Below are positions 22,756-45,742 of a stretch of 64,000 bases of DNA, piece after piece. Position 1 is the stretch's first letter; the number at the start of each line of letters is the position of its first letter. The stretch comes from Macrostomum hystrix. Its lineage: Eukaryota > Animalia > Platyhelminthes. The notes beneath the pieces were generated by a model. That model saw nothing but the letters and a program-made list of their open reading frames with translations. It was not told the DNA's origin and did no database searches. Location of the stretch: NCBI GenBank assembly GCA_950097015.1, contig CATNEN010000008.1, positions 3,410,001-3,474,000 of the forward strand, written 5' to 3'. The translations under genes were made by a program, and so were the position numbers.

Positions 22756-23353
22756 ATGTCATATGAATTGATTCCTGTATTACTTGGGTATTACTTGTAC
22801 CGAAGTCATAGATTTTGTACAAATATAATAGAACTAGTTTTTGTTTTAAGTTAAGAGAAAAAACATATTGTTTGTCTGAATACCTTTCTATGTTAGGCAT
22901 TACATTAGGTATAGAAAAACGTTTTCTTAAATGTCGTGTTGATGATCTTATCACTGCCAGCGTGATTGAGAAAACAAGTTGCTGCTTCTAAAGGCTACCT
23001 TTAGACAAGGAAGCAAACAAAAATTATATTTTTAGTATATTAAGATCTTAGACATTTAGTATAGTAGGATAACTCTAAATTAAAGAACACGTGTAAGAGA
23101 TTATAAAATGTGTAAAGGGGTAAACTGTCCGATAGCAACAGTTTAAATACCAGGTAAACTACGAGTGTAAAGCACATAATTGCGCTTGAGTTTGTAATTC
23201 CAACATCAATTTCAAAGTGTAGCTTAGGAACGTAATGTGCAATACAATGTTCAGCATTAAAAGTCTTAAAAGTAGCTAAAACTGTCTCAAAAAGCACACG
23301 ATTCTAGAAAACGATACATACGAAATACTCGTAAATCACTTTCGCGCAACCAA

Positions 23354-26300
23354 TTATTTAAATTTGAGGTACCTTACAGCGGCCTGCTCAGGACGGTACA
23401 CGATGTACTCGTCGTTCAAGACGCCCTTGGTGGCCTTAGTGTTCCGCTTGGCGAACACAGAGTCGTAGCCTGCGTCGGTGACAGCCTTCAGGTTGAGGTG
23501 ATTCTGTGGCCTGTCGCAGACCATTGTCTTTCCGAGAAGAACGTCGCACAACAGAAGAGTCCGGGTGCCTGACTCGCGACAGTACTGCACGCTCTTTGTG
23601 GTGTCCGTGGCAAAGTAGATCCCGGCGCCGTACATTCCACTAGAGCCCACCTTGAATCCCTCTTTGATGATCAACTCGGCGATATCGCCTCGGGTTCCAT
23701 GAAAGAACTGCTCGGGAACTGAGTCCTTCTTCACCAACTGGCTGCGAACATCCAACAGACGACGGTCAAGAGCCATGTTCTCGATCTTCTCGATGCTCTC
23801 AATCTCTGTCACTGTGACAGAGTGTTCGCTCTTGATGTAGCGCATCACTCGATCGTACACCTTGAAGTACTCGACTGCCGTGTTCTCATCGCTCTCTGTC
23901 AGCACGCTTCTCTTGATCTCGTTACCTCGAGCTGTCTGCAGCTGCAGCAGCCTCAACTTCTTCTCAAGTCCCCAGCAGGAGGAGCAAGACTTTTTCTCCA
24001 ACAGTCTGGAAGCAGCGCAGCAAGCGAATTTCTCTTCGTGACCGCACTCAAACTTCTGAGATACAATGTCGAGGCACTCGTCCTCCAGCTCCCAGCAATG
24101 GCATTCGTGATTGCAGCCTTTCCTCTGTACCTTCACTGGGCATGGTGGACAAGGTGATTTTGAGCATACAAACTGGCACTTGTGCCCACAGGAGAGAGTC
24201 TTCTCGCATGGCTTCTGGCATGCTGTCTGCTTCACGAGTGAAACCTGGCTGCATTGTGTGCGCTGCGTGTGACCACAAGACAGGGTCACTAGCAAAAGAC
24301 GATCACATTGAGTCTTTTTCATTCCGCAAGGGCTCTCAAACTGAGCGCTGCATGTGATGCACTTTCTAGCAACCGTAACTGTACAAGAATTCTCGGAGCA
24401 GGTCTCAAAACACTTCTGGGCGCACCTGTGACCGCAGGACAGTGTCTTCGGACACTGCTCGACACATTTCACAGAACCATGCCCCCACTCAGTGCAAGTC
24501 AATCGCATCACATGACCACATGCTAACGTCTTAGCCGCATATTCCTCGCACGATAAAGTCGGCTGGTTACACAGCTTTGATTGAATGTGACCACAGGTCA
24601 GTTCGATATTTATTTTTTCGGCGCATAAGTTCGAATCGCATATCTCTCGGCAGCGAAGCTGGCAAGAATGCCCGCAACTTAATGTTTTGATGCATTTTTC
24701 AATGCAAATCTGTGGCTTTTTTAAATCACAGCATTTTATTTGCTTTGTGTGACTGCAAGGCAGCCTCACCGCAACGACCGCATCGCATCTTTGGTGCTTA
24801 TGCCATGGTTGGCACTTTTTGGGACAATTATGCTTGCCACACGGCATGTCTTGCATGCATACGCTTCTGCAGAAGACGCCCTTTGAGCTGGACAACTCTG
24901 CAGCAGTCCTCCAGCAGTGCTCTGTTCTGTGCTGCTTGCACACCACCGGAAACTCGTGTCGCAGCACTCCGTCCGCCTCAAACGCTGTCAGCAGGCAGTG
25001 CCACTCTGGGCAGCACTTTAGCAGCGACGCCTTGCCGATGAAGACGAGACCGCAGCGCGACCTAGACTGCGCCACACATCGACGGTTCAGTGAGGCCAGG
25101 AATCCGGGCTTCGCGCTGCGTACCAGTGACACTAGGACAATGTCGTTCTCGTCGCCTTGGTACACATCGATACTGTGCACTTTGATAAGGCCACCAGAGG
25201 CTCCAAAGTCGGCATTGTCTACTGCGTCCGTGACATCAGATGTGCCGTCCAGCTCGTTCTTCCATTTTTCCAACTTCGGTCGCAGTTTCTGGCGAATGAG
25301 CCGCACCTGGCCCTGATACGGTGTCAGAATCGTGATCTGGCTGGGCTTGTAGCCGAACCTCAGGAACGTCATCGCCAATTGAACTGTCAGTTCCGCCTCG
25401 CCTTCGTTCACGTAGCTTCGCTCTCCGGACTCCGGCATGTTCTCGACGTCCCCAAATGCCACAGCGTGCGGCATGAACGACGGAACTTGATGGTCTTTCA
25501 CGCTCTCCTCGTTGTCCTTCAAGTTCGGATAGACGTCAAGCCTCAGGTACTTGGAAATGTCAGTGCGCATTCGGTTCTGGAATTCGAGACAGTCGAACGG
25601 AAAGCCGCAGTTGATGAGCCTCTCCATCATTGACACGTCTAGATGACAGTGCTTCACCAGCTCAAAGTTCTCCACGTTAGGACGCAGCTGCTTGTGATCA
25701 CCGATAAGGTAGAGCCTCTCTGTCCAGTCTCCCAGACAGCCAAGAAGCATTGGCTCCATGATCTCAGCGGCCTCTTCGACGACAACTGTGTTGGGCCTGA
25801 GTCGCTTGAGTAGCTCATTGTTGATTGATGCTCCGGTGATGGTCATCGCAATCACGTCGACGCTCTGGCAGATCTGGACATCTCTGTTTAAGTTCGCTTC
25901 CTTCAACTCGTCTCGATGACGCTCGTACTCGCTGAAGTCTGAGTTCAATTTCGAGCACTGCATTCTCCATAGTTTCTCATAGTGGTCCAACAAGCAGCCC
26001 TGCATGAACAGAAATCGATCCTCAGGCTTCAGCTCCCACAGATTCTGGCTGTATCGCAGAGATGACCACCTCTCTGACACAATTTGAATGAGACGCAGGT
26101 CAAGCTTGAGACTGCTCGGCTCTTGCTCTGCCAACAGCAGGCTGATGTTTTCAATGCTGCGGCTGTCTCCACCTGAAACGAGAAGCCGTTCCATCTTCAT
26201 TTGCTCCTGCTCATCGTTGATCTCGTCCTCCTCGACGTCGTTTGCGTCAGGCGTCTTTGAATTGTCACTGCGTGGTGCGCCATCGCTCGGTTTCAGCGAC

Positions 26301-29300
26301 TGAAGCATAGCTGGAATAATTCTATTCATCATCTGCTGATTTGGAATCCAGCTTCGCAAAGCAATCCCTAGCCTATCTTTCAGCGGTTGAGGAGGCACAG
26401 TGCCCTGTCGACGCATTGTGCATGTTGGATGCTGAAGAAACTGCCTCCAGAACCGATCCTGATTTTGTTCGCTCCAGTAGACCGACAAGAAATTTGCACA
26501 GAACGAAACATTTTCCATCTTAAACAGATTGCTCAGCTGCATCAAAAGAGTTCTTTTCGATTGCTCAGCAAGGCGCCAGTGGTCTTTTGCCTCCTCGTCT
26601 GGCAACGTGTCTCTCCTAGATCGAATGTCAAGCCTTTTTGTAAGCTCGGTTTTTTTCGATCGACCACCAAGTCGAATCAGGTCTATTTGAGAATCGTATC
26701 GCGTGACAATCTTCCTAATGAACTCGTCGAGAGCGTTGTTCTTGTAGGTGACGAGAAGCACAGGACCCCGCCTGTCCATTCTTGTCTCATTCGCTGTGAG
26801 ATACCGCACCAGATGAGTCCCCACGAAGGTCTTGCCGCACCCAGGAGGTCCTTGGATGATTGAAATTCTGCGCCGCGTGCAGTTCTTGAAAGCCACTTTC
26901 TGCGACGCATCGAGTTCTTTGCAAATGCCTTTCAAAACTCTTCGACGCATTTCAGACAACTTTTCCGGTGCTACAGAAAGACTCTTCCTTGGCGAAAAAG
27001 GAAAGAGCAGTCGGTTAATTCGCAAACTTGACTGAGACTCGGGAGACACTGCCTCGACTGGAAGCTCTTCTGTTACCTTGACGGTAATCTCGTCGAAGTC
27101 ACAGGACACTAGTTCCTTCACCAGAGGCAGCTTCTTGCCCTCGAGGGACTGCACATTCTTGAGCACGTGTCGGTAGGCCTGGTAGTAGGTCGGAGACTCG
27201 GCCAGCCACAAAGGTGACTTTCGAACACGCAGCCGTCGAAGCAGATCTGACAGCTCGATGCTGTTGGATTCGCCGATCGGCTCAACGAAGATCAGACCAT
27301 TGTTGTTCAGCAAGTCGGAGTCTCGGTTGCTCACTGTGACGCACACAAACTCTGAGAATGCATCGTCGAACGAGAGACAAAGCAAATTGCCGAACATGAG
27401 CAGAGGAGACTTGTCCCAGTTCTTCACCTCTCTGTTGAATGGCTTGACCTTCAGCACCAAAGAGAGCTCTCTGTGGGTGATGTCGATGCCTCTGAGCTCC
27501 ACTTCGTGGTAGACGGTCATGTCTCTGCGGTTCAGTGTGCCGCCGACAAACTGCTGAATTCCCGATCTCAGCTTCTCAAAGCAGTCCGCTCGGAGCAGCT
27601 TCAGGTTCGTCTCAAGATAGTCAGCCACGGAGTCGTACGGAGCGTGAGTTCGCACAGATGGCAGCAGGCGGATCATCTCTCCCATGTCGGCAGAGACCAC
27701 AATCTCCTCCTTATTCAGGGTGACTGGCAGCTCATGCCAGCTCAGGTCGGAGGTGCGCTTTGGCAGAAATCTCTTGCACATCAGCATGGCCAGCTCGAAG
27801 GCCTCACTGTGGCCAGTAAAGTGGGAGGCATAGAACTTCTGGCAGAGCTGCATGATGAGGTAGCATCTCTCAGGAACCAGTTGACCAACCAGTTCGCAGA
27901 AGCTCTTGAGTGTGCTCACTTTCTCTCTTGTCCAGTTTCTGCTCGCCGCCTCATTGAACAGCTGGCGGCATGCGCCCCTGTCAAGCTGGAAGTTCCTCTC
28001 GTGCATCAGGTGTCCGAGGCTCAGGCCCAAGTTGGCCCGCTGGTAGGAACTGGCGCTGCTGCTCACTCGGACCATGAACTCGACTACGGAGTACAGAGAG
28101 TCAGCATTCAGTCGAGGCCACTGACCGACGATCGCCCATGCTGGAGGCACCGACAGGAGCAGCTGAATGTCTTTGTTGCTCGACTTGTGTTTGAGCGAGT
28201 GGATGAAGTCCCAGACTTCTTCGTCATCTCTCTCGACTGGCTTGTCCAGGCGCATGTCCATGCTGGACCTCTGACCTTGCTTCCCTTCTCGGGGCGTGCA
28301 GATCACCTGGTCACCTTGCTTCGGACTCCAGCAGCCGTAGTACAATTTTCTGGGGAGAACTGACTGCCTGCCAGTTGCAGTCAATACCAGGTATATCGTT
28401 GCATTTCCATCTTTGATTGCTTGTCTGCCAGTTATGGTGCCTGTGAAGATGGATATGGCAGCCGCCATCGGTGCAACGGGTTCCTTATCTTTTAGCGGTG
28501 CTTGGCTTATGTCCTTGGCTACGTCCTTCCCATTTTTGTTTTCGATCTGATATCGCAACCGGTCGCCAAGATTCAGGTTCAGCCGCTGGACCCAATGGGG
28601 CCAAAAGATGACGCCGTGACTGGCTGTCGGGCTGTCGTCGTAAGTGACGTAGCCGCACCCGCCAGGCTTGATGTGGACAACGTAGCCTGCAGTGTTGCAG
28701 TGGGAGTTTGACTTTTAAAACTCCTCGACGTATGTTACTAATTTGGGGGTGAGTGGCAGAGCAGTTAACGCGTTCGCCTCTCGCACCGAGGTCCCTGAGC
28801 TCGATTCTGCAGTGAGGCCTCATTAAATTAGGGCGCAGCCGCGGAGAGAAGGCTTGGGGCTTGACGTGTAATTTACGCCTTCGAAGTCCAACCTCCAAGG
28901 AACAGTGAATTGTACACTGCCTGACGATGAAAAAGTCAGGGTAGATGTACACACCTGTGTGACAGTGTGCCTTCGTACAGTATCTGCGCGGGTGTGTGGT
29001 CAGGAGTCAGCGGAATGGGGCAGAATTCTCCTCGCTGGCTGCGGGTCGACTCTCATTAAATTAGAATCATCATTATACATTTGCATTTTATATTTCCTAA
29101 GTAATTTTTCCTAGTTCTAACGATCCCACTACGAGAACGAACAATTTTAAAAAGTGTTTTGAGGATTGGAATAACAAGAGAGCATTGACGATCAGGCTTA
29201 CCGAACCTAAAGCGACCCTGACTTTCGTCTTTTTCGTCGCCATCGAATGCTTTGTCCGACTCTGAGGCAGCCCACGCCTGTTCACAAGATTCTGTGTCTG

Positions 29301-31047
29301 GCTTGGGAAAACCACCTGCGTTGGTTTTTTATTCCAGAGGAAAGCATTTATTTGACGATTCGTGTCTTTGGGACGACTTTCTCTGCTTTAACAGACCGGG
29401 GGTATTTCAAATACCCAAATTTTCCTTTTTTCTGTACCTCCCAAAATATTCAATCAAACACCACCAAAATTCTGAACATGAGCTAAAATTTTCCGCTCTA
29501 TCCGATGAAAATCACAAAACATTGGCATCGTCGAGATATTCAACGATTCTTGTCGAGGTTAGTCAGTTAATCGTGACTACTATCGTGAAGTAGTCAGTTA
29601 ATCGTGACTACTATCGGGAAGTAGTCAGTTAATCGTGACTACTATCGGGAAGTAGTCAGTTAATCGTGACTACTATCGGGAAGTAGTCAGTTAATCGTGA
29701 CTACTATCGTGAAGTAGTCAGTTAATCGTGACTACTATCGGGAAGTAGTCAGTTAATCGTGGCTACTATCGTGAAGTAGTCAGTTAATCGTGACTACTAT
29801 CGGGAAGTAGTCAGTTAATCGTGACTACTATCGTGAAGTAGTCAGTTAATCGTGGCTACTATCGTGAAGTAGTCAGTTAATCGTGACTACTATCGGGAAG
29901 TAGTCAGTTAATCGTGACTACTATCGGGAAGTAGTCAGTTAATCGTGACTACTATCGGGAAGTAGTCAGTTAATCGTGACTACTATCGTGAAGTAGTCAG
30001 TTAATCGTGGCTACTATCGGAAAGTAGTCAGTTAATCGTGACTACTATCGTGAAGTAGTCAGTTAATCGTGACTACTATCGTGAAGTAGTCAGTTAATCG
30101 TGACTACTATCGTGAAGTAGTCAGTTAATCGTGACTACTATCGGGAAGTAGTCAGTTAATCGTGGCTACTATCGTGAAGTAGTCAGTTAATCGTGACTAC
30201 TATCGGGAAGTAGTCAGTTAATCGTGACTACTATCGTGAAGTAGTCAGTTAATCGTGACTACTATCGTGAAGTAGTCAGTTAATCGTGACTACTATCGTG
30301 AAGTAGTCAGTTAATCGTGGCTACTATCGGGAAGTAGTCAGTTAATCGTGGCTACTATCGGGAAGTAGTCAGTTAATCGTGGCTACTATCGTGAAGTAGT
30401 CAGTTAATCGTGGCTACTATCGTGAAGTAGTCAGTTAATCGTGACTGCTATCGGGAAGTAGTCAGTTAATCGTGACTGCTATCGGGAAGTAGTCAGTTAA
30501 TCGTGGCTACTATCGTGAAGTAGTCAGTTAATCGTGACTAGTCAGTTCATCGTGACTACTATCGTGAAGTAGTCAGTTAATCGTGACTACTATCGGGAAG
30601 TAGTCAGTTAATCGTGACTAGTCAGTTAATCGTGACTACTATCGGGAAGTAGTCAGTTAATCGTGACTACTATCGGGAAGTAGTCAGTTAATATTTGAAA
30701 TACCCCGTGGTTTTTACCCAGGGGGAAAAATAGCAAGGACTTATTATTGTTAAAGGTATGAATTGTGAACTTCTGTCGCGCATTGGAAGACAGAGGCAAG
30801 ACATTGTTAGAGCTCATTTCTGACGTACCGGCCCCTCCAGCTCCTCGTCCAACGGGCGCACGGCGGCTCTTGCTGCATCCTCTTCTTCCGCCTCTGGACT
30901 TTACCGACTGTGGGTCTGAAATTAGTTTATTTTAGTAATGAATAAAACATAGCTCACATGCTATTGTGCCATTGTTATTTTGATACCTTCACTCTGAGCT
31001 TGTGCCCAAGGTGGACGATGACTTGATCGCGATCGAAAATGAGCCAT
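23354..31047 (-). CDS. ZNFX1: ZNFX1-like SF1 RNA helicase / NF-X1 zinc-finger protein fused to a C-terminal PARP-like ADP-ribosyltransferase, with N-terminal RGG-like and cold-shock modules; copy A (~1826 aa). Exons 31047-30987, 30915-30829, 28686-23354
   Basis: Helicase motifs: IIQGPPGCGKT, VTYKNNALDEF, LIRLGGRS, VVVEEAAE, LIGDHKQLRP, LDVSMMERL, LEFQNRM, ILTPYQGQV, YQGDENDIVLVSLVRS, NRRCVAQSR. Repeated C-x3-L-x-C-G-H fingers follow. ART motifs: FFHGT, GMYGAGIYFA, NDEYIVY. Two small upstream exons join by phase-1 GT-AG introns into one open frame (5481 nt). Confidence 0.9.
28745..29055 (+). mobile_element. tRNA-derived SINE, family 1, copy 1 (in intron 2 of ZNFX1-PARP copy A, antisense to the gene)
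   Basis: A-box-like TGGCAGAGCAGTT and B-box-like GAGCTCGATTC in a tRNA-like head. The body is shared with copies at 34121, 39797 and 49440. Confidence 0.8.
29396..30710. mobile_element. Putative non-autonomous DNA transposon bounded by terminal inverted repeats and carrying an internal 31-bp satellite
   Basis: 15-bp perfect inverted repeat GGGGTATTTCAAATA (29399-29413) / TATTTGAAATACCCC (30692-30706). The left ~165 bp recurs, diverged, at ~32903-33072. No clear TSD was seen. Confidence 0.55.
29561..30690. repeat. 31-bp minisatellite (AGTAGTCAGTTAATCGTGACTACTATCG(G/T)GA), ~36 copies, each with an 8-bp hairpin stem
   Basis: Tandem periodicity; AGTAGTCA/TGACTACT inverted repeat within each unit. 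Confidence 0.97.
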
Positions 31048-31342
31048 TTTAATCTCTCAGATTTCTGGAAGTGTTTGGTTGATGCTTTTATAGTAAAAAA
31101 TGGCTACACATATGCCGCTCTACCTCTCCTCACACGTTATACATTTTCTTCTCTAATTCTGAAACCCTTGAAGACAAAAATATGATGATAAAAGCATGTT
31201 TGAGGAAACCTTGCTAATAGCTTTTCGGCACACTATAGTTTACCAGATATTTTCATAGATACACACTTAAACGCATTTGCTTTGATCAAAGAGTGAAATT
31301 TCAGTCAGTCATGGCTAAGACATATTCATGTCTTAACAAATG

Positions 31343-31434
31343 GAAAAAGGAAAGAGCAGTCGGTTAATTCGCAAACTTGACTGAGACTCGGGTGTCACTG
31401 CCTCGACTGGAAGCTCCTCTGTTACCTTGACGGT
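31343..31434 (-). pseudogene. 92-bp orphan copy of internal ZNFX1-PARP coding sequence (matches 26994-27085)
   Basis: Near-identical by direct alignment (about three substitutions), same orientation as copy A, ~300 bp upstream of its ATG. Confidence 0.9.
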
Positions 31435-32488
31435 GAGGCCTCATTAACTTACTTTACACACGCTCATTATTCTATGGCCTAAACAAGTCCCGCAATCCAA
31501 TCTCTCCTGTGTTTATTCCAAGCACTAAAACTTCGTCTCTGGCTAATGTTTGTAGATAACTATGAGCGGTACGCAATGAGTAAATCTTTTCATTGCAGAC
31601 GATCAAATCGTATGAACTGTCTGTGGCATAGAAAAGTGAGACGCTCGTAGCAGGGGGGGTGTGAAGAAAACTTGAAGAAAACTTTGATGTCTATGGTAGA
31701 GTGTATTCATACCTCTTCTCATCTAGGTTCAATGCCGAATGGCAAACAAACAATGAATTGTAACGCATAAAAACTACAAATAATGATCGTCAAATAGTGA
31801 TATAATGAAAACATTTATGCGGTACGCAATAGTCGTGACGCAATGATTAGGCCATAGAATATTGGATCCGATGAAATCCAATGAACGCGAAGGACCACTT
31901 ACAATCGTTTGGCAAAGATACCATTTAGATGCTATTATATCTTACCTTTTACAATATAGTCGAACGGTCGAAACTTTCATCGTTTGCGCCTCTACGTTTT
32001 AAACCTGGGAGTTATCTAACATTTCTCTCAGAGATTTGTGCAGTTTTTATGGCTAAAATACGCTGACATATATAGAGTTGATGGCAAAAGCGAAATTGTC
32101 AGGCTTTCTTGGAAATTATCAAGGCCGCTGCGCGTGAGCACAGTACTTAGTGCACTGCGCGTACACCCACTGTTAGTTAGAGCGGGAACCGCTAAGTGCG
32201 GTACTGTGCCTATTATCTGAGCAGGTGGTACGCTGCTAGTGGCTAGAAGGCTTTTTTCGTTTTTGTTTTTCTATTTGTTTACGTAAACAGAATTATATTA
32301 AGCCAATCGAATGCAACGAATTTGGTCCCTCTACTCTTAACCACAGAATATTACAATATTGTTATATTCTGTGCTCTTAACAGCTTAACAGCTAACATCG
32401 TTAATTTCCAACGTCTAACGTTGCAGGCTGCCGTCTATCTATCAACCTTACTGTTGTACTCGTACTTAAACTAGCTTTGTTGTTAGTT

Positions 32489-32742
32489 GACCGATGCCGC
32501 TGCTTAAGCAGCCATAGACTGTTCTGACCGCTGCCGCTGCTTAAGCAGCCATAGACTGTTCTGACCGATGCCGCTGCTTAAGCAGCCATAGACTGTTCTG
32601 ACCGATGCCGCTGCTTAAGCAGCCATAGACTGTTCTGACCGATGCCGCTGCTTAAGCAGCCATAGACTGTTCTGACCGATGCCGCTGCTTAAGCAGCCAT
32701 AGACTGTTCTGACCGATGCCGCTGCTTAAGCAGCCATAGACT
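32489..32742. repeat. 37-bp tandem repeat (GACCGATGCCGCTGCTTAAGCAGCCATAGACTGTTCT), ~7 copies
   Basis: Tandem periodicity; contains the perfect 14-bp palindrome GCTGCTTAAGCAGC. Confidence 0.96.
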
Positions 32743-32902
32743 ACCCCACTTAACAAGTGCGCGAGGCCCAGCCCCTCGCAAATATATGCACCTTCTTGCG
32801 TTCCCTTCTGCTTCTCGCTTTAGCGACTTAGTTACACTTACATCAACCTTTTAGTCTGAATCGTTACCCTCGTAGTTTCGTTACGACTTTAAAATTCGAC
32901 CG

Positions 32903-33072
32903 ACCACGGGGATATTACAAATACTTACATTTTCCCCTATATCCTAAAACATTCAACCAAACGCCATGAAAATCCAGACCACGGGCTACAATTTTCCACT
33001 CTCTCTGATGAAAAAACTTTCAGAATCATAAAACATTGGCATCATGAAGATATTCAACGATTCTCGACGGGG
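32903..33072. repeat. Second, diverged copy of the left end of the TIR element at 29396
   Basis: Shared blocks such as GGGG..ATT.CAAATAC, CAAAACATTGGCATC and GATATTCAACGATTCT. Confidence 0.7.
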
Positions 33073-33262
33073 GTGTCTGGTAGCAAAGGCCACCTACATC
33101 GGCAGAATTTTTCAGCTCCAAAAATTTAAACAGTTAACCATGTCGGCCATTATTGTTGACCATATTGCATTGAATATATTGTTTATTGTTATGTATCTTA
33201 GCTAATATGGATTCGCTTTATTGGTTCATACATAGCAATTTTGTTTTTCTTGTCTCCGGTCT

Positions 33263-34115
33263 ACAGAAATGTACATTCACTCCAGAAATGTACATTCACT
33301 CCAGAAATGTACATTCACAACAGCGATGTGTGTGTATGACCACAAACCAGTCAGTCTTTCGCAGTCCGTCAGGCCAAGAAAATGCGCCGTGGCTATTTGG
33401 GGGGGTCCAGAGGTCAATGACAGAAAGGACGGTAGGCCGCATCTGAGAGGCAAACAGGTGCTGGGTGTCATGCGTGACTCGCCACAGTTAGGACAGCGGT
33501 CCTCTGCGACGCCGTAGCAGACGAGGATGGGAGACAGCCGGCTGAGCGAAGTGCGTGCGAGCGCGTCGCCTAAGCTTAGTCTCATCCGGCCACAGCCCAA
33601 CCACTCTGTTAGGCGGGAGGGAAGCGATGACAGCCTAGACTTCGCGTGTGTGCTGAGCTCTGCGGGCTACCTTGAGGACCTCCTCGTCGTCTAGGCCTTT
33701 CGAAACCGAAAACCCCGCGAGCCAGTCGGCGTTGCGGTGACAATGCGTGAAGAACTCCGTCTTTAGGGTATTTAGGGTCACATTGGAGTTTAGGGTCAAA
33801 TGTGACACCAAGAATTTTGGTGTGGGTCACCTGCGCCAGAACAACCCCCGTTGATGCGGACGTCCAGCTGGAGACTGTACTGTTTTTGGTCCAGCGTGAA
33901 CAGCGTTGATGAGAATTGATGACCAACTACAGCGATGTACAATCACTCCAGTGATGTAGATTCACACCAGCGATGTACATTCACTCCAGCGATGTACATT
34001 CACTCCAGCGATTTACATTCACTCCAGCTATGTACATTCACTCCAGCGATTTAAATTCACTCCAGCGATGTACATTCACTCCAGCGATGCACTTTCACAC
34101 CAGCGATGTACATTC
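33263..34115. repeat. 19-bp minisatellite (CAGCGATGTACATTCACTC), split into 33263-33320 and 33929-34115 by a LINE fragment
   Basis: The same unit is present on both sides of the insertion. Confidence 0.85.
33330..33928 (-). mobile_element. Decayed, internally deleted non-LTR retrotransposon (LINE) 3' fragment, probably I/Ingi/Jockey group
   Basis: The minus strand encodes KILGVTFDPKL (post-RT motif) and a frameshifted C-terminal Cys/His knuckle (RCPNCGES..HLF..DLW..AHFLGL). There is a (CA)n-like tail and a flanking 10-bp direct repeat ACAGCGATGT (33320-33329, 33929-33938). Confidence 0.7.
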
Positions 34116-34120
34116 ATTCC

Positions 34121-34820
34121 GTGGTGAGGCCACATTCATTTGGGACGCAGTCGTGGGGAGAAGGCTTGAGAGCAATTTACACCTTGAAGTCCAACCTCCA
34201 AGGCACAGTGAGAGTGACACTGCCTGACGATGAAAAAGTCAGGGTAGATGTACACACCTGTGCGAGCGTGTGCCTGCGTACAGTATCTGCGCGGGTGTGT
34301 GCTCACATTGTGCTCAACGCCGAGTCGTGGACGCTGACGGCTACGCTGGAGCGGCAGCTGGACTCGGCGCACTCGGGGCTGCTCCGTACGGCCTTTCAAG
34401 CTGACGAGAGCGTCGGGACCGAGACTCTGTACGAGAGAGCCCAGCTGCAACGCCCGTCCACCATCCTGCGCCAGCGGCGACTTCGACTAGCGGGCCATGT
34501 TATTCGGGCCGAGAGCTACTGCCGCCAGCCCGCCCAGGACGTCCTGCTGCTCACCCTGCAGGGCCCGTTCAGGCGCGGCCAGGCTCGGACCCGCCGCTAC
34601 GTCGACTGCTTGCTGAGCGACGCCGGGGCGCCCGACACTGCCACCGGTGCAGACCATGTTCGCGCGCTGGCTCTGCGGCGCGCCATCTGACGCTGCCTCC
34701 CTGACTTTTGGGGCTAGCGTCTTTTGTTGTTGTTGTTGTGTTGTTGCTCAGGAGTCAGCGGAATGAGCAGAATTGCCTCCTCGCTGGCTGCGGGTCCAAT
34801 GTCATCAAAATGATGTGCAA
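34121..34820 (+). mobile_element. SINE family 1, copy 2 (5'-truncated), interrupted by an RTE fragment
   Basis: 34121-34305 and 34745-34820 are colinear with the intact copies at 28745 and 39797. Confidence 0.8.
34306..34744 (+). mobile_element. 5'-truncated RTE-clade non-LTR retrotransposon 3' end
   Basis: ORF tail NAESWTLT..LD......LLR..LY..ILRQRRLRLAGHVIR..RRGQAR is typical of the RTE ORF C-terminus. Stop at 34688-34690, short 3' UTR, (TTG)n tail, 6-bp TSD TGCTCA (34300-34305, 34745-34750). Confidence 0.82.
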
Positions 34821-35285
34821 AGCATGTGTTATGAGCATTATTTGCGGCTCGTCAGCAAGTCTGGCCTTTGTTTATCATCGATGGACTTCTAAAAAATGGT
34901 TTATTAACCCCATAGCTTTCTCCTTTGGGGTTATGTCCGAGATTTTTTGCCTCTTGAAAGTCGATAACCTAAGGGCTAAAAAGCCTTTTGTCTGAAGTCC
35001 GTCGATGACAAACAAAGGCTAGACTTCTTGACGAGCCGCAATGCTCAAATCCGACTCACTCGTCAGCCATCAGCACGCAAGCATTGTTAGCCTTTCAGCT
35101 GATCATGCCAAATTTCGGCCAGACCATGTGGGACTTTTCAAATGGGGGGCATTGTGTGGGAATCGCTTCAGGCATTTCTTTGTTCGAGTTGGGTCACGCA
35201 ACGATGTGAAATTCTCGATACAATTCGGTATAAAGTCTGGTTTGGGATTACTTGAATATTGACGGCTGTCTCGCCCAGTCCCACC

Positions 35286-36389
35286 ATGACCACCAACAAT
35301 GACACGGCCGAGGTTGCTGCAGTTCGTCTATTCACAAACACTCCGGCCTTCCTATTCCTGGACTGCTGGAGCGGCGACCCCGACAGGGCGATCTTCTGCC
35401 AGTTCAACACCGCTCTTGGCGCCATGGCCAGCCTCGTCCTGCCAGTCATAATTGTCGGCGGCTTCATCGGTAACAGTCTCACAGTCTACATCTACCTGTG
35501 CAGTCTGCGACCCCTGACCCGACACGGAGTGTACTTAGCCATGGTGGGCGTCTCTGACAACTGCAACCTGTTTTTCACGGGCTTCATGTGGCTCTTCTTA
35601 GCCAAGGGCCTGCCCTGGATCAGCGGCGCCAAATACGGCTACTTCATTCTGAATGAATCAGAGCCAGCTTGCCGATTTATGAGAACTTGTGAAATGTTGT
35701 TTGGCTTCACCTCCGGCACCCTATTTATGCTGATGGTGATTGACAGGTGTCTGAGCGTGTACTTCCCGTTCCGATTCCAGAGAGTGTCCGGAAAAGCGGC
35801 CCTCAAAGCCTGCCTGGCCTTGACAGTTGTTGCCACAATTGGCACAATAGTCTATGGTCTGCCCATCCGCTGGCTTCAGGCCGGGGTGTACACCGTCTGC
35901 TCAGCTTCTCTCCCTGGCTGGCAGCAGTGGGCGTACTTGTCCGGACTCTTGCTGCTGTTCATGCCGCCAACTGTACAGCTCCTGATCATTCTGGTGGCCA
36001 ACGGCTGTCTCATTGTGAGGATGCGCCGCATTGCGTCAGATCAGGCCGAGATCAGGGCCGACGGAGACGAAGGCAAGCTGACTAACACCGTCATTTGCGT
36101 CGCCTTGTCCGTGATTCTCGTCATCTGCTCCCTGCCAGTGGAGTTCGCAATGATTGCAAATGCCTTCCTGGTGTTCTCCGGTGTCACAGCTGCTGCCGGC
36201 TTCACGAAGCTCATCTACGCCGTGAACGACATCGGCAGGATCCTGATTCTCATCAACCAGTCCGTGAACTGGATCATTCTGATCTGGAAGAGCGCCCAGT
36301 TCCGCAATGCATTCCTAAGCATCCTGGTTTGTCAGCGCAATCGAAAGGAGCTGGTCAGAACGGAGCAAACGGCCTCAAACCGTTGCTAA
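35286..36389 (+). CDS. Intronless rhodopsin-class (class A) GPCR, peptide-receptor-like orphan, 367 aa
   Basis: Seven hydrophobic segments with GFIGNSL (TM1), YLAMVGVSD (TM2), IDRCLSVYFP (DRY-like), ECL cysteines, VICSLP (TM6) and NQSVNWIIL (TM7). Confidence 0.88.
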   Translation: MTTNNDTAEVAAVRLFTNTPAFLFLDCWSGDPDRAIFCQFNTALGAMASLVLPVIIVGGFIGNSLTVYIYLCSLRPLTRHGVYLAMVGVSDNCNLFFTGFMWLFLAKGLPWISGAKYGYFILNESEPACRFMRTCEMLFGFTSGTLFMLMVIDRCLSVYFPFRFQRVSGKAALKACLALTVVATIGTIVYGLPIRWLQAGVYTVCSASLPGWQQWAYLSGLLLLFMPPTVQLLIILVANGCLIVRMRRIASDQAEIRADGDEGKLTNTVICVALSVILVICSLPVEFAMIANAFLVFSGVTAAAGFTKLIYAVNDIGRILILINQSVNWIILIWKSAQFRNAFLSILVCQRNRKELVRTEQTASNRC

Positions 36390-36435
36390 TGAGACATTGG
36401 GCACTGGTCGATATGACTGCTGACTTGAGCTTTAT

Positions 36436-37590
36436 CAGACACATGATTATCTACTTAGACATTATCCAGCACAATATTATCTACTTAGACATTATCCTGC
36501 ACAATATTATCTACTTAGACATTATCCTGCACAATATTATCTACTTAGACATTATCCTGCACATGATTATCTACTTAGACTTATCCTGCACAATATTATC
36601 TACTTAGACATTATCCAGCACAATATTATCTACTTAGACATTATCCTGCACAATATTATCTACTTAGACATTATCCAGCACAATATTATCTACTTAGACA
36701 TTATCCTGCACAATATTATCTACTTAGACATTATCCTGCACATGATTATCTACTTAGACATTATCCAGCACAATATTATCTACTTAGACATTATCCAGCA
36801 CAATATTATCTACTTAGACATTATCCTGCACTATATTATCTACTTAGACATTATCCAGCACAATATTATCTACTTAGACATTATCCAGCACAATATTATC
36901 TACTTAGACATTATCCAGCACAATATTATCTACTTAGACATTATCCTGCACAATATTATCTACTTAGACATTATCCTGCAAAATATTATCTACTTAGACA
37001 TTATCCTGCACAATATTATCTACTTAGACATTATCCTGCACATGATTATCTACTTAGACATTATCCTGCACAATATTATCTACTTAGACATTATCCTGCA
37101 CAATATTATCTACTTAGACATTATCCTGCACATGATTATCTACTTAGACATTATCCTGCACAATATTATCTACTTAGACATTATCCTGCACAATATTATC
37201 TACTTAGACATTATCCTGCACATGATTATCTACTTAGACATTATCCTGCACAATATTATCTACTTAGACATTATCCAGCACAATATTATCTACTTAGACA
37301 TTATCCTGCACAATATTATCTACTTAGACATTATCCTGCACAATATTATCTACTTAGACATTATCCTGCACATGATTATCTACTTAGACATTATCCTGCA
37401 CAATATTATCTACTTAGACATTATCCTGCACAATATTATCTACTTAGACATTATCCTGCTCAATATTATCTACTTTAGCGTTTTCTGACACATGATTATC
37501 TACATTGACATTATCCTGCACATGACTATCTACTTAGACATTATCGTGCACAATATTATCTACTTTGGCATTATCCTGCACATGATCTTT
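36436..37590. repeat. 30-bp minisatellite (ATTATCTACTTAGACATTATCC(T/A)GCACAAT), ~38 copies
   Basis: Tandem periodicity; starts ~50 bp after the GPCR stop. Confidence 0.96.
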
Positions 37591-38213
37591 TTATTAGATA
37601 ATATGAGGCACTGTAAGGTGTAATTAACCTAACAGTAAAATGGATTTCCTTCAAAAATAAATTCGCAATTTTTTTGTCCTAATTTTTCTTGAATTTATTC
37701 ACTCATGTTACTTTAACGTTATTGACTTGTAGTTTAGAAAGCAGCATTAATAGTCACAGTATTGCCACAATGTACTCGGCTGTATCCGAGATCCACCTAC
37801 AGGTGACAAGCTCCCTAACAACAGAACTGTCTGTCTGTCTGAGTACTCATGCTTTCATACTATTTATGCTCCAATGTATCCAAATTCACTGTCTCGACGC
37901 GTCAGTCTGGCAAAAATCTATTTATAGAACCAGAGAAAGTACAGCAGTGTACATATACTGTACAAGTTAGCATTTCAGACACGCAGAGGAATACGTACTG
38001 CAGTTGCTCGGGCAGTCGATTTCTAGGAAATACCAAGCAGTTCTTACAATGGTGATGCTATATATCTAGCGAGTCGTGCGAAAATATATTTATTTACTGA
38101 AATCCAACTGAAATATCAACTGAAAATTTAAGGACCTACTTACCGAAAATTAGGTAAGACATTCATTCTGGACATCCATACAGTTTTTTTATTAACTTAG
38201 ATTCATAAAGCCA

Positions 38214-39050
38214 TAATTCTCCCAGATCATTATTTTGTACACCCTTAATTATCCTAGATCGTTATTTTGTACAGCCTTAATTATCCCAGATCAATATTTT
38301 GTACACCCTAATTATCCTAGATCGTTATTTTGTACACCCTAATTATCCTAGATCGTTATTTTGTACACCCTAATTATCCCAGATTGTTATTTTGTACACC
38401 CTAATTATCCCAGATTGTTATTTTGTACAGCCTTAATTATCCTAGATCGTTATTTTGTACAGCCTTAATTATCCCAGATCATTATTTTGTACACCCTAAT
38501 TATCCTAGATCGTTATTTTGTACACCCTAATTATCCTAGATCGTTATTTTGTACACCCTAATTATCCCAGATCGTTATTTTGTACAGCCTTAATTATCCC
38601 AGATCATTATTTTGTACAGCCTTAATTATCCCAGATCATTATTTTGTACAGCCTTAATTATCCCAGATCATTATTTTGTACAGCCTTAATTATCCCAGAT
38701 CATTATTTTGTACAGCCTTAATTATCCCAGATCATTATTTTGTACAGCCTTAATTATCCCAGATCATTATTTTGTACAGCCTTAATTATCCCAGATCATT
38801 ATTTTGTACAGCCTTAATTATCCCAGATCCTCGTGTTGTAAAGTCTTAATTCTCAAAGATCCCTATTCTATATAGCCTTAACATTCCCAGATCCTCATGC
38901 TGTACAGCCCGAATCCTCCCAGATCCTCGTATTGTTTTGCTATAATTCGCCCAGATTATTATTCTGTACAGCCTTAATTCTGAAAGATCCCTATTCTGTA
39001 CAGCCATATAATAGTCCTGGTTCCTCATGCTGTACAGTCCCAATCATCCC
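38214..39050. repeat. 31-32-bp minisatellite (AATTATCCCAGATCATTATTTTGTACAGCCTT), degenerating after ~38830
   Basis: Tandem periodicity; ends ~120 bp before the copy B start codon. Confidence 0.92.
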
Positions 39051-39165
39051 AGATTGAAAATTCGTTGCCCAATTTGTAGGACAATCACAAAATTTGCATT
39101 GCAGATTTTCCGGACTGGACAGACTTTTAAGCCCTGCCTTGCCAAGCTTGAGTGTCTAACATTAA

Positions 39166-42100
39166 ATGGCAGAAAGTCTGCCCATTGACAAAAGGAAATA
39201 CGGTGACAGACAGAGCTGGAGAGGTCAGTGTAAAGTAGGCCTTTTAATGCATGTTTATTGATACCAGAGTTTTCGTAGAAACTGACCAAAGTTTTCAATC
39301 TTTGTGCCTAACCTAATTGTCACCAATAGGCGGTGAATTCAGAGGCGGCAGCAGAGGCGGCAGTCATGGCAGAGGTGGCGGCCGTGGCCTACGAGGTGCG
39401 TGGCGTGGTGGAAGCTCTGAAGTGCTGTTTCGCAAGGGAGCATCTACCGAGTTGCCCCCTAGGGCTGAGCAGAACTCAGCTGTAAATCCAAATTCTGCTC
39501 AAGAGGACAGCGATTTTCGATTTGGTGAGTTAGATTCGTGCTTTGAATTGCTATGCTCGATGAATAGAGATCATTAAATTAAACCTGATGTCAGTTGCAC
39601 CAGATCTACAGCCAGTGGTTCAGTCCGTGTACTGCGAAGGTCGACACAACAACTCAAATAGGAACCAATTTTACCTCCAGCTGTCTGAACTGAAGCACTG
39701 TGGAATTAATTGTCTTGCTTGAGGGCACAAGTTGATTGCGCTTGGGCTGAGATTCGAACTTGTGACCTCTCCGAAGCTATAACTCGCGTTTCTATAGGAG
39801 GTCAGTGGTAGACCGGTTGACGCACCGAGGTCCTTGAGCTCGATTCCGCGGCGAGGCCACATTAAATTGGGGCGCAGCCGCGGAGAGAAGGCTGGGGGGC
39901 TTGTCGTGCAATTTACACCTTTGAGGTCCAACCTCCAAGGCACAGTGAGATTGTACACTGCCTGACGATGAGAAAGTCAGGGCAGATGTACACGCCTGTG
40001 TGAGTGTGTGCCTGCGTACGGTATCTGTGTGCTGAGGACTCAGCGAAGTGGGCAGAATTGCCTCCTCGCTGGCTGTGGGTCTAGTGTCACTAAATGATGT
40101 GCCATTGCCAGCAGCAGATACTATGTATTATTTTTTATTACTTCAATAGAACGACTCTAGCCTTTGCTCAAAAGCAGGTTTAAAAAAATTACTCGAGTTT
40201 CCCTTTCATTTTTATACCTTTTACCTCGGAATAAACTGCTTCTTACACATAGCATTCTTACCTGATAGCACGTGAGCGCCGGGTTCTACAGTTTCAAACA
40301 AGCTAACAAACCTGTCTTCCTTCAGGTTACGTGGTCAAAATCGTGCCGGCCAAGTACAGCTTTGTATCGCTCGAGGACGACGCGTCTGCCCGACGAGGAG
40401 TGATCTTCTGGAACAGCTGGGTGGAGCAGCTGGGCCTTCAAGTTGGCGACCGACTGCGCTACAGAACTATATACAATGCGACGGGCAAGGTGTCAGCCAC
40501 GGATATTAGCCGGGCTCCAGTGCCAGCTGCAACTCAAGCAGTCACCCAGTCCGTCGTGTCGATGCACCAAAACCATGATCAAACCGCTCTTCAGGCCGCT
40601 GATCATCAGGAAGTTATCCCTGAACCGGAAGTAGATTCGATAATTGCTGGCGCCATAACTGGCAGACGAGCAATCAAAGATGGAAATGCAACGATATACC
40701 TGGTGATGACTGCAACTGGCAGGCAGTCAGTTCTCCCCAGAAAATTGTACTACGGCTGCTGGAGTCCGAAGCAAGGTGACCAGGTGATCTGCACGCCCCG
40801 AGAAGGGAAGCAAGGTCAGAGGTCCAGCATGGACATGCGCCTGGACAAGCCAGTCGAGAGAGATGACGAAGAAGTCTGGGACTTCATCCACTCGCTCAAA
40901 CACAAGTCGAGCAACAAAGACATTCAGCTGCTCCTGTCGGTGCCTCCAGCATGGGCGATCGTCGGTCAGTGGCCTCGACTGAATGCTGACTCTCTGTACT
41001 CCGTAGTCGAGTTCATGGTCCGAGTGAGCAGCAGCGCCAGTTCCTACCAGCGGGCCAACTTGGGCCTGAGCCTCGGACACCTGATGCACGAGAGGAACTT
41101 CCAGCTTGACAGGGGCGCATGCCGCCAGTTGTTCAATGAGGCGGCGAGCAGAAACTGGACAAGAGAGAAAGTGAGCACACTCAAGAGCTTCTGCGAACTG
41201 GTTGGTCAACTGGTTCCTGAGAGATGCTACCTCATCATGCACCTCTGCCAGAAGTTCTATGCCTCCCACTTTACTGGCCACAGTGAGGCCTTCGAGCTGG
41301 CCATGCTGATGTGCAAGAGATTTCTGCCAAAGCGCACCTCCGACCTGAGCTGGCATGAGCTGCCAGTCACCCTGAATAAGGAGGAGATTGTGGTCTCTGC
41401 CGACATGGGAGAGATGATCCGCCTGCTGCCATCTGTGCGAACTCACGCTCCGTACGACTCCGTGGCTGACTATCTTGAGACGAACCTGAAGCTGCTCCGA
41501 GCGGACTGCTTTGAGAAGCTGAGATCGGGAATTCAGCAGTTTGTCGGCGGCACACTGAACCGCAGAGACATGACCGTCTACCACGAAGTGGAGCTCAGAG
41601 GCATCGACATCACCCACAGAGAGCTCTCTTTGGTGCTGAAGGTCAAGCCATTCAACAGAGAGGTGAAGAACTGGGACAAGTCTCCTCTGCTCATGTTCGG
41701 CAATTTGCTTTGTCTCTCGTTCGACGATGCATTCTCAGAGTTTGTGTGCGTCACAGTGAGCAACCGAGACTCCGACTTGCTGAACAACAATGGTCTGATC
41801 TTCGTTGAGCCGATCGGCGAATCCAACAGCATCGAGCTGTCAGATCTGCTTCGACGGCTGCGTGTTCGAAAGTCACCTTTGTGGCTGGCCGAGTCTCCGA
41901 CCTACTACCAGGCCTACCGACACGTGCTCAAGAATGTGCAGTCCCTCGAGGGCAAGAAGCTGCCTCTGGTGAAGGAACTAGTGTCCTGTGACTTCGACGA
42001 GATTACCGTCAAGGTAACAGAAGAGCTTCCAGTCGAGGCAGTGTCTCCCGAGTCTCAGTCAAGTTTGCGAATTAACCGACTGCTCTTTCCTTTTTCGCCA

Positions 42101-45100
42101 AGGAAGAGTCTTTCTGTAGCACCGGAAAAGTTGTCTGAAATGCGTCGAAGAGTTTTGAAAGGCATTTGCAAAGAACTTGACGCGTCGCAGAAAGTGGCTT
42201 TCAAGAACTGCACGCGGCGCAGAATTTCAATCATCCAAGGACCTCCTGGGTGCGGCAAGACCTTCGTGGGGACTCATCTGGTGCGGTATCTCACAGCGAA
42301 TGAGACAAGAATGGACAGGCGGGGTCCTGTGCTTCTCGTCACCTACAAGAACAACGCTCTCGACGAGTTCATTAGGAAGATTGTCACGCGATACGATTCT
42401 CAAATAGACCTGATTCGACTTGGTGGTCGATCGAAAAAAACCGAGCTTACAAAAAGGCTTGACATTCGATCTAGGAGAGACACGTTGCCAGACGAGGAGG
42501 CAAAAGACCACTGGCGCCTTGCTGAGCAATCGAAAAGAACTCTTTTGATGCAGCTGAGCAATCTGTTTAAGATGGAAAATGTTTCGTTCTGTGCAAATTT
42601 CTTGTCGGTCTACTGGAGCGAACAAAATCAGGATCGGTTCTGGAGGCAGTTTCTTCAGCATCCAACATGCACAATGCGTCGACAGGGCACTGTGCCTCCT
42701 CAACCGCTGAAAGATAGGCTAGGGATTGCTTTGCGAAGCTGGATTCCAAATCAGCAGATGATGAATAGAATTATTCCAGCTATGCTTCAGTCGCTGAAAC
42801 CGAGCGATGGCGCACCACGCAGTGACAATTCAAAGACGCCTGACGCAAACGACGTCGAGGAGGACGAGATCAACGATGAGCAGGAGCAAATGAAGATGGA
42901 ACGGCTTCTCGTTTCAGGTGGAGACAGCCGTAGCATTGAAAACATCAGCCTGCTGTTGGCAGAGCAAGAGCCGAGCAGTCTCAAGCTTGACCTGCGTCTC
43001 ATTCAAATTGTGTCAGAGAGGTGGTCATCTCTGCGATACAGCCAGAATCTGTGGGAGCTGAAGCCTGAGGATCGATTTCTGTTCATGCAGGGCTGCTTGT
43101 TGGACCACTATGAGAAACTATGGAGAATGCAGTGCTCGAAATTGAACTCAGACTTCAGCGAGTACGAGCGTCATCGAGACGAGTTGAAGGAAGCGAACTT
43201 AAACAGAGATGTCCAGATCTGCCAGAGCGTCGACGTGATTGCGATGACCATCACCGGAGCATCAATCAACAATGAGCTACTCAAGCGACTCAGGCCCAAC
43301 ACAGTTGTCGTCGAAGAGGCCGCTGAGATCATGGAGCCAATGCTTCTTGGCTGTCTGGGAGACTGGACAGAGAGGCTCTACCTGATCGGTGATCACAAGC
43401 AGCTGCGTCCCAACGTGGAGAACTTTGAGCTGGTGAAGCACTGTCATCTGGACGTGTCAATGATGGAGAGGCTCATCAACTGCGGCTTTCCGTTCGACTG
43501 TCTCGAATTCCAGAACCGAATGCGCACTGACATTTCCAAGTACCTGAGGCTTGACGTCTATCCGAACTTGAAGGACAACGAGGAGAGCGTGAAAGACCAT
43601 CAAGTCCCGTCGTTCATGCCGCACGCTGTGGCATTTTGGGATGTCGAGAACATGCCGGAGTCCGGAGAGCGAAGCTACGTGAACGAAGGCGAGGCAGAAC
43701 TGACAGTTCAATTGGCGATGACGTTCCTGAGGTTCGGCTACAAGCCCAGCCAGATCACGATTCTGACACCGTATCAGGGCCAGGTGCGGCTCATTCGCCA
43801 GAAACTGCGACCGAAGTTGGAAAAATGGAAGAACGAGCTGGACGGCACATCTGATGTCACGGACGCAGTAGACAATGCCGACTTTGGAGCCTCTGACGGC
43901 CTTATCAAAGTGCACAGTATCGATGTGTACCAAGGCGACGAGAACGACATTGTCCTAGTGTCACTGGTACGCAGCGCGAAGCCCGGATTCCTGGCCTCAC
44001 TGAACCGTCGATGTGTGGCGCAGTCTAGGTCGCGCTGCGGTCTCGTCTTCATCGGCAAGGCGTCGCTGCTAAAGTGCTGCCCAGAGTGGCACTGCCTGCT
44101 GACAGCGTTTGAGGCGGACGGAGTGCTGCGACACGAGTTTCCGGTGGTGTGCAAGCAGCACAGAACAGAGCACTGCTGGAGGACTGCTGCAGAGTTGTCC
44201 AGCTCAAAGGGCGTCTTCTGCAGAAGCGTATGCATGCAAGACATGCCGTGTGGCAAGCATAATTGTCCCAAAAAGTGCCAACCATGGCATAAGCACAATC
44301 GGTGCGAAGAACTTGTCTCAATCATGCTGTCCTGTAAGCACACAGTTCAAGTGAAGTGTTACCTTTCTGAATTTCCGCCGAAGTGCGTGGAAAAATGTTC
44401 TCGAGTATTGAGCTGCGGCCACATCTGTCAAGGCAATTGCAGAGAAAAATGTGACAAGAAGTTCTGCACAGTTACGGTTGACGCCCAATTAAAATGTGGC
44501 CACGTTCTAACGAAACTCTGCAACCAGCCGCTTTCTACATGCGAAGAATCTGTGGCGAAGACTCTCCCGTGTGGCCATGTAAAACAAATGATGTGCTTTG
44601 ACTGGCAGAAATCGTCCCAACCAAAGTGTGTCGAGCAGTGTCCGAAGACACTGTCCTGCGGTCACAGGTGCGCCCAGAAGTGTTTTGAGACCTGCTCCGA
44701 GAATTCTTGTACAGTTACGGTTGCTAGAAAGTGCATCACATGCAGCGCTCAGTTTGAGAGCCCTTGCGGAATGAAAAAGTCTCAATGTGATCGTCTTTTG
44801 CTAGTGACCCTGTCTTGTGGTCACAGGCAGCGCACACAATGCAGCCAGGTTTCACTCGTGAAGCAGACAGCATGCCAGAAGCCATGCGAGAAGACTCTCT
44901 CCTGTGGGCACAAGTGCCAGTTTGTATGCTCAAAATCACCTTGTCCACCATGCCCAGTGAAGGTACAGAGGAAAGGCTGCAATCACGAATGCCATTGCTG
45001 GGAGCTGGAGGACGAGTGCCTCGAAGTTGTATCTCAGAAGTTTGAGTGCGGTCACGAAGAGAAATTCGCTTGCTGCGCTGCTTCCAGACTGTTGGAGAAA

Positions 45101-45742
45101 AAGTCTTGCTCCTCCTGCTGGGGACTTGAGAAGAAGTTGAGGCTGCTGCAGCTGCAGACAGCTCGAGGTAACGAGATCAAGAGAAGCGTGCTGACAGAGA
45201 GCGATGAGAACACGGCAGTCGAGTACTTCAAGGTGTACGATCGAGTGATGCGCTACATCAAGAGCGAACACTCTGTCACAGTGACAGAGATTGAGAGCAT
45301 CGAGAAGATCGAGAGCATGGCTCTTGACCGTCGTCTGTTGGATGTTCGCAGCCAGTTGGTGAAGAAGGACTCAGTTCCCGAGCAGTTCTTTCATGGAACC
45401 CGAGGCGATATCGCCGAGTTGATCATCAAAGAGGGATTCAAGGTGGGCTCTAGTGGAATGTACGGCGCCGGGATCTACTTTGCCACGGACACCACAAAGA
45501 GCGTGCAGTACTGTCGCGAGTCAGGCACCCGGACTCTTCTGTTGTGCGACGTTCTTCTCGGAAAGACAATGGTCTGCGACAGGCCACAGAATCACCTCAA
45601 CCTGAAGGCTGTCACCGACGCAGGCTACGACTCTGTGTTCGCCAAGCGGAACACTAAGGCCACCAAGGGCGTCTTGAACGACGAGTACATCGTGTACCGT
45701 CCTGAGCAGGCCGCTCCAAGGTACCTCGTCAAATTTCGCTAG
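39166..45742 (+). CDS. ZNFX1: ZNFX1-like SF1 RNA helicase / NF-X1 zinc-finger protein fused to a C-terminal PARP-like ADP-ribosyltransferase, with N-terminal RGG and cold-shock modules; copy B (~1889 aa). Exons 39166-39223, 39330-39524, 40326-45742
   Basis: Same helicase, zinc-finger and H-Y-E ART motifs as copy A. The upstream exons (MAESLPIDKRKYGDRQSWR|GGEFRGGSRGG...FRF|GYVVKIV) join through phase-1 GT-AG introns into one 5670-nt frame. Confidence 0.92.
39655..39790 (-). mobile_element. tRNA-derived SINE fragment, family 3
   Basis: The minus strand reads GAGGTCACAAGTTCGAATCTC (B-box region) followed by TGTGCCCTCAAGCAAGACA, which resembles the conserved body of many metazoan SINE2 elements. 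Confidence 0.5.
39797..40110 (+). mobile_element. SINE family 1, copy 3 (in intron 2 of ZNFX1-PARP copy B, sense to the gene)
   Basis: Homologous to 28745-29055; B-box-like GAGCTCGATTCC. Confidence 0.8.

Follow-up and report, generated by a model that had tools for sequence, protein, structure and literature searches.

Near-identical coding tracts flank an internal diverged block in two inverted ZNFX1-helicase/PARP genes of the flatworm Macrostomum hystrix

How can two genes be nearly identical over most of a long reading frame and diverged to saturation in a short block inside it? This question is raised by a 64,000-nucleotide stretch of Macrostomum hystrix DNA (assembly GCA_950097015.1, contig CATNEN010000008.1, positions 3,410,001 to 3,474,000 of the forward strand), which we call the window and in whose own numbering positions are given below. 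The window carries two paralogous genes, A and B, which are divergently oriented (head-to-head), A on the minus strand and B on the plus strand. Both consist of the same protein parts, namely a cold-shock-like N-terminal domain, a ZNFX1 domain, a UPF1-like superfamily 1 (SF1) helicase, Cys/His fingers and a C-terminal PARP catalytic domain. An earlier note on the window had described a "hypervariable" zinc-finger cassette embedded in near-identical DNA, and had proposed that gene conversion homogenizes the catalytic domains while arms-race selection preserves the distinctness of about three fingers that serve as a specificity module. Our analyses indicate that A and B are likely to be old inverted duplicates homogenized by interlocus gene conversion, in which the zinc-finger block and the N-terminus would persist as unconverted relics.

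Diverged and near-identical parts of A and B

Comparison of the large exons revealed that the A/B pair is a four-part mosaic, in the order diverged, identical, diverged, identical (Table 1). In BLASTN alignments, the left tract (A 24794-28441 vs B 44296-40649) was 99.5% identical, with 18 substitutions in 3,648 bp and no gaps, and the right tract (A 23366-24469 vs B 45727-44623) was 99.3% identical over ~1,105 bp, with 7 substitutions and one 3-bp gap. BLASTN of A against B gave no match in the block separating the two. These alignments confirmed that A and B are near-identical in two tracts with scattered substitutions, as the earlier note had observed. The limits that it had drawn needed some adjustment, as the left tract begins 5 nt earlier (28441/40649) and the right tract extends to 23366/45727, ~10 nt before the stop codons. 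Among the left-tract differences 12 are synonymous and 6 nonsynonymous, corresponding to a synonymous divergence (dS) of 0.015. The right tract has no synonymous difference against 5 nonsynonymous ones, with 3 further changes in its last 8 codons, for a synonymous divergence of ~0.002.

In the block that separates the tracts, hereafter the patch, A and B share 58% nucleotide and 48% amino-acid identity (109 aligned codons, codon alignment). Synonymous difference (pS) is saturated in the patch at 0.82 and nonsynonymous difference (pN) is 0.32, giving a pN/pS of ~0.4. The length difference amounts to one codon, at the right edge, and the reading frame is therefore kept. The edges of the patch are abrupt, lying on the left at A 24793/B 44297 and on the right at ~A 24470/B 44625, with zero A-B differences in the ~400 nt before it and the ~156 nt after it. 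By contrast, the left tract has a graded 5′ border, its first 60 nt containing 4 differences. In total, 138 of the 166 differing sites fall within 327 of the 5,088 aligned sites (hypergeometric P ~5e-148). Despite this divergence, 19 of the 21 Cys/His positions of the patch are identical in A and B. These 19 positions are invariant across A, B, a paralog on contig C3 and the M. lignano ortholog of that paralog, compared with 38% identity at the non-ligand positions. Thus, the description of a ~325-bp diverged block with abrupt edges that keeps the frame and the Cys/His ligands was borne out. The first finger of A aligns to human ZNFX1 finger residues 1377-1397 (PDB 9q9z), which places the patch in the finger arm.

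The patch is, however, not the sole diverged coding part, since the in-frame N-terminal part is as diverged. There, A and B show 58% nucleotide and 52% amino-acid identity, with a pS of 0.67 and a pN of 0.34. The earlier note had recognized a single diverged block; the patch is indeed diverged, but the equally diverged N-terminal coding part had been overlooked. Comparison of the flanks showed no similarity of A and B downstream of the stop codons, and upstream DNA of the two genes has only a ~280-bp dispersed repeat in common.

Table 1. Positions of the parts of A and B, their exons and the DNA between them, in window coordinates
Feature	Positions	Strand	Remarks
Unconverted N-terminal coding part, A	28442..28686	-	cold-shock-like domain and linker
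Unconverted N-terminal coding part, B	40326..40648	+	linker with 25-codon insertion relative to A
Left converted tract, A	24794..28441	-	linker, ZNFX1 domain, helicase, first finger; GC content at third codon positions (GC3) 0.66
Left converted tract, B	40649..44296	+	99.5% identical to A tract
Unconverted patch, A	24470..24793	-	108 codons of Cys/His finger arm; one CSH and three CGH knuckles; GC3 0.47
Unconverted patch, B	44297..44625	+	109 codons; GC3 0.51
Right converted tract, A	23366..24469	-	distal fingers and PARP domain; 99.3% identical to B
Right converted tract, B	44626..45727	+	99.3% identical to A tract
Gene A large last exon	23354..28686	-	open reading frame without internal stop; stop TAA 23354-23356; Pfam domains
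Gene B large last exon	40326..45742	+	architecture as A; stop TAG 45740-45742
RGG-rich upstream exon of gene B	39330..39524	+	acceptor AG/G, donor G/GTGAGT
Spacer between A and B	28687..40325	.	11.6 kb; 5′ exons and promoters of both genes, minisatellites, dispersed repeat, 96-bp helicase-gene fragment

Probable gene conversion and the ages of the segments

Synonymous divergence makes a ~50-fold step within one reading frame, from 0.015 in the left tract to 0.82 in the patch. Because protein-level selection cannot produce such a synonymous jump across one base position, the segments must differ in age or history. Together with the diverged N-terminus, the unrelated 3′ flanks and the lack of a third-copy donor, this contrast upholds the proposal that gene conversion homogenizes the helicase and PARP parts of the two genes. 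DNA and protein searches with both patches found no third copy resembling either one in the 220-Mb assembly (42 contigs), and returned only A, B, the C3 paralog and more distant ZNFX1-like genes. The next paralog, on contig C3, has 31-35% identity in the patch and 40%/37% identity over 208/209-aa queries. This third gene (C3:4524084-4529168), the ortholog of M. lignano P0002, is single-copy and matches A and B in architecture and finger number. An intragenic donor for the patch was also considered and rejected, the candidate matches amounting to just one of ~24 nt, between B's patch and the next finger.

We compared A and B with their close relatives, which in word-index protein searches (with the whole protein, the patch region and a 309-aa piece) were only M. 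lignano P0001 and P0002. The tree of the tracts joins A and B as sisters, whose tips measure 0.001-0.002 and whose shared stem measures 0.13; the distance to M. lignano P0001 is 0.19. When the cold-shock domain is taken together with the patch, the maximum-likelihood (ML) tree and the approximately unbiased (AU) test leave A, B and P0001 as an unresolved trichotomy. The patches of A and B are 51% identical to each other vs 58% and 68% identical to P0001, and the cold-shock domains are 52% identical to each other vs 60% and 65% identical to P0001, so that in both parts A-B is the largest of the distances. Identity of the patches to the C3 gene and P0002 is 31-40%, vs 58-68% to P0001. The A-P0001 and B-P0001 patch identities are similar to that of the sister-gene ortholog pair C3/P0002 (59%). 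These comparisons suggest that, in the unconverted parts, the split between A and B is about as deep as the split of the two species. Three-taxon site patterns (7, 17, 29) had seemed to rule out a sister relationship of A and B in the patch; this argument was dropped, given the trichotomy in the ML tree and AU test.

Conversion from arm to arm best accounts for the mosaic. Non-reciprocal copying between the arms is likely to have recently homogenized two coding stretches, of 3.65 kb and 1.1 kb, and to have left uncopied the N-terminal domain, the 325-bp finger-arm block and all DNA outside the coding sequence, at saturation-level divergence. The relics are too diverged to start homologous repair, and the tracts therefore most likely never drifted far apart. 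If the tracts end exactly where homology ends, sharp edges and a self-sustaining island would follow. Conversion probably occurred repeatedly and not just once. In the right tract, 0 synonymous differences were found where 3.6 would be expected at the left-tract dS (P 0.03), so the right tract may be the younger one. At 0.66-0.67, GC3 is higher in both tracts than in the patches (0.47 and 0.51) and in the single-copy C3 paralog (0.42-0.46 throughout), a contrast that is suggestive of long-term GC-biased conversion.

Several observations weigh against this interpretation. The tree of the unconverted parts leaves the order of the duplication and the species split unresolved, with support of 46/27 for (A,B) and with (B,P0001) not rejected (AU P 0.36). 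The single close outgroup protein, P0001, is an incomplete gene model that spans 78 of the 108 patch residues. The difference densities of the left and right tracts are alike (P 0.63), which makes a single discontinuous event indistinguishable from repeated events. Moreover, GC3 varies within the tracts, falling to 0.53-0.57 in troughs, and reaches 0.68 in the unconverted N-terminus of A; for these reasons the argument from GC bias is only suggestive.

Selection and other accounts of the diverged block

By its pattern of substitution, the patch is under purifying selection in both copies. A-B differences in the patch coincide preferentially with sites at which the C3 paralog and P0002 differ as well (odds ratio 5.3, P 8e-5), and the enrichment persists without the invariant Cys/His positions (odds ratio 2.9, P 0.03). 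Conservation of patch columns was judged on the C3/P0002 pair only, because more distant ZNFX1-PARP proteins differ in finger number. The sister-gene window homologous to the patch is more conserved than 76% of windows, and between species the patch is better conserved than 34-45% of the left-tract windows. Since the island is internal and the homologous window is not fast-evolving, passive escape from conversion by fast drift is not an obvious cause.

What, then, holds the island apart? At a little short of an even chance, selection may maintain it by removing haplotypes that have lost one of two versions of this arm segment. Two selected versions would fit the internal position of the island, between 3.6 kb and 1.1 kb of near-identical sequence, and the constraint on both of its versions. 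A selected divergence island would be recognized by a dN/dS >1 or by a functional or population signature; in the patch pN/pS is ~0.4, and the support for such selection is indirect, coming from the internal position of the island and from its not being a fast region. With slightly lower probability, the internal island may instead have arisen from a chance seeding event and have been kept thereafter by the heterology barrier alone. A rather speculative extension of the selective account, to which we give little weight, is that the two unconverted parts, the N-terminal domain and the finger-arm block, together form a paralog-specific assembly code. If the flatworm proteins polymerize as human ZNFX1 does, in which the N-terminal ARM domain of one protomer touches the first arm fingers of another, distinct parts would block the co-assembly of otherwise identical sensors, and conversion of just one of the two parts would be selected against.

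According to the arms-race proposal, ~three fingers form a pathogen-specificity cassette that diversifying selection prevents from merging, and conversion homogenizes the catalytic domains. The vertebrate ZNFX1 protein is antiviral (PMC13710534), and the other unconverted coding part of A and B is a nucleic-acid-binding cold-shock-like domain. In human ZNFX1, however, twelve finger motifs build a rigid arm, and the first six of them make contacts between protomers (ARM-finger and finger-finger), whereas RNA binding falls to the helicase core, 1C domain and ARM domain (bioRxiv 10.1101/2025.10.14.682297; PMC13710534). The finger arm is thus structural and RNA is read elsewhere in the protein, which leaves the idea of a specificity module without backing. 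The proposal would account for an island that is internal, sharply bounded and not an intrinsically fast region, and the right-tract differences are all nonsynonymous (5:0 vs 6:12 in the left tract; Fisher P 0.014, from small numbers). In the patch itself, an arms race would be expected to leave an excess of amino-acid change or many variants. We found instead that pN is well below a saturated pS, that the differences are enriched at sites variable in the sister gene, that the shared ligands are all kept and that the genome holds two versions only, with no third variant. The patch can accordingly not be called hypervariable, and it lacks the excess of amino-acid change whose absence the earlier note had itself named as refuting its proposal. 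We therefore regard arms-race selection as unlikely.

It is also quite improbable that one of the patches was imported, in a single conversion step, from a lost or unassembled member of the subfamily, in which case A and B could be a young pair. A single event would yield sharp edges on both sides without further assumptions; such borders are expected equally from homology-limited tracts and do not discriminate between the two histories. Both patches do fall within the A/B/P0001 subfamily, given their closer identity to P0001 than to the C3 gene and P0002. Yet no donor is present in the assembly at the DNA or the protein level, and two separate imports or boundaries would be required. The equally diverged N-terminal part and the unrelated 3′ flanks indicate, moreover, that A and B are old regardless.

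An artefact of assembly or polishing, in which the near-identical tracts or the inverted duplicate are not real, is very improbable. Near-identical inverted repeats are difficult to assemble, and another ZNFX1-like gene is present in two copies, 99.45% identical over >3.3 kb (C6 ~9.8-13.7 kb and C24 ~6953.2-6957.0 kb), one of them at a contig start; that pair may reflect a recent duplication or else a haplotig that was not collapsed. In the case of A and B, each locus has unique flanks and its own N-terminal coding sequence and patch, and 25 scattered differences remain in the tracts, with a purifying pattern in the left one. Nor can mis-polishing raise ~58% identity to 99.5% over 3.6 kb. Finally, a recent whole-gene duplication followed by local hypermutation or very fast protein evolution of the patch can practically be set aside: in the ML tree of the unconverted parts the tips of A and B are long and that of M. 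lignano is short, but synonymous sites are saturated within the patch and untouched 1 bp beyond it, the N-terminus and flanks are diverged too, and the Cys/His ligands are all kept with pN < pS.

Gene structure, surroundings and known parallels

Both copies carry the ZNFX1 domain and the UPF1-like SF1 helicase (AAA_11/AAA_12) by which membership of the ZNFX1 family is recognized. The Pfam models PF25396, PF13086, PF13087 and PF00644 all scored above their cut-offs in A and in B, with PF00644 at 70.7 and 74.4 bits in the two copies vs a cut-off of 26.7. The best relative of solved structure is ZNFX1 (9q9z, E 5e-83). The Walker A motif GPPGCGKT is present in A, and the predicted PARP domain, whose closest solved relative is PARP4, has the H-Y-E motifs FFHGT, GIYFA and NDEYIVY in both copies. 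As far as can be read from their coding sequences, A and B are thus both intact, with catalytic motifs kept. The cold-shock-like domain was called via alignment to homologs carrying PF00313. PF20173 (the RZ finger/E3 module) had no match in A or B, which have the PF00644 PARP domain at the C-terminus instead. The Pfam NF-X1 finger model had no match in the finger region even at E = 10; NCBI names the homologs of A and B "NFX1-type". Many database proteins from other animals carry the same fusion of ZNFX1-helicase and PARP, and the architecture is therefore not new.

The large exon of A starts at a good splice acceptor (CAG/G, 28686). Both large exons open at such an acceptor, which implies at least one upstream exon per gene. 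The RGG-rich upstream exon of B, which was handled apart from the large exon, is similar to the N-terminus of M. lignano P0001, and a counterpart looked for upstream of A was not found. The spacer contains a 96-bp helicase-gene fragment (31342-31437, minus strand), whose 32 aa are 93.8% identical to A and B and whose DNA is 96.7% identical; the fragment was probably left behind by a further gene copy or by a rearrangement. The ~280-bp dispersed repeat lies just upstream of both large exons (28782-29061 and 39821-40095), in the same window orientation and with 85% identity, and further copies are found mid-spacer (34116-34818) and downstream of B (49541-49667). Long minisatellite arrays occupy positions 4838-5797, 7308-9135, 11836-13811, 21940-22760, 29560-30692, 36423-37598, 53082-54276, 55003-60894 and 61284-62134 of the window. 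In the ~5.9-kb array at 55-60.9 kb, GC skew and AT skew are both extreme.

Arm-to-arm gene conversion in inverted repeats is known from the palindromes of the human Y chromosome. Like the palindrome arms, A and B are inverted arms on one chromosome, 11.6 kb apart and ~99.5% identical, probably by intrachromosomal conversion. Unlike them, the arms of A and B span coding parts only and are broken by an unconverted block, and beyond the arms the DNA is diverged or unrelated.

Divergence islands under interlocus conversion have been described for exon 5 of the human red/green opsin genes, for RHD/RHCE and for protocadherin clusters (reviewed in PMC3924837), and the Tigriopus GOT1 paralogs provide a further example (PMC3728101). 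In the theory of Teshima and Innan, such a divergence peak is a candidate target of selection (cited in PMC3924837). The A/B pair resembles these cases in that old duplicates appear to have been kept near-identical by conversion while a short coding segment is diverged. It differs from their graded peaks in the saturated synonymous sites and knife-sharp edges of its island, which is a candidate selected island only. The A/B pair is thus a fresh example of a described divergence-island pattern, with unusually sharp edges and saturated divergence.

With human ZNFX1, A and B have in common the ZNFX1 domain and the UPF1-like SF1 helicase followed by a Cys/His finger arm. They differ from it in the N-terminal cold-shock-like domain and in the C-terminal H-Y-E PARP domain, which replaces the Miz and RZ ubiquitin-ligase module. 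The locus offers a clean natural case in which conversion tracts halt at an internal heterology block, in a widespread and uncharacterized ZNFX1-helicase/PARP family. If selection does not hold the island, the A/B pair would be another case of concerted evolution. If selection does hold it, this part of the finger arm and the cold-shock domain would mark the functional difference between the copies, and would provide a handle on the role of the ZNFX1 arm.

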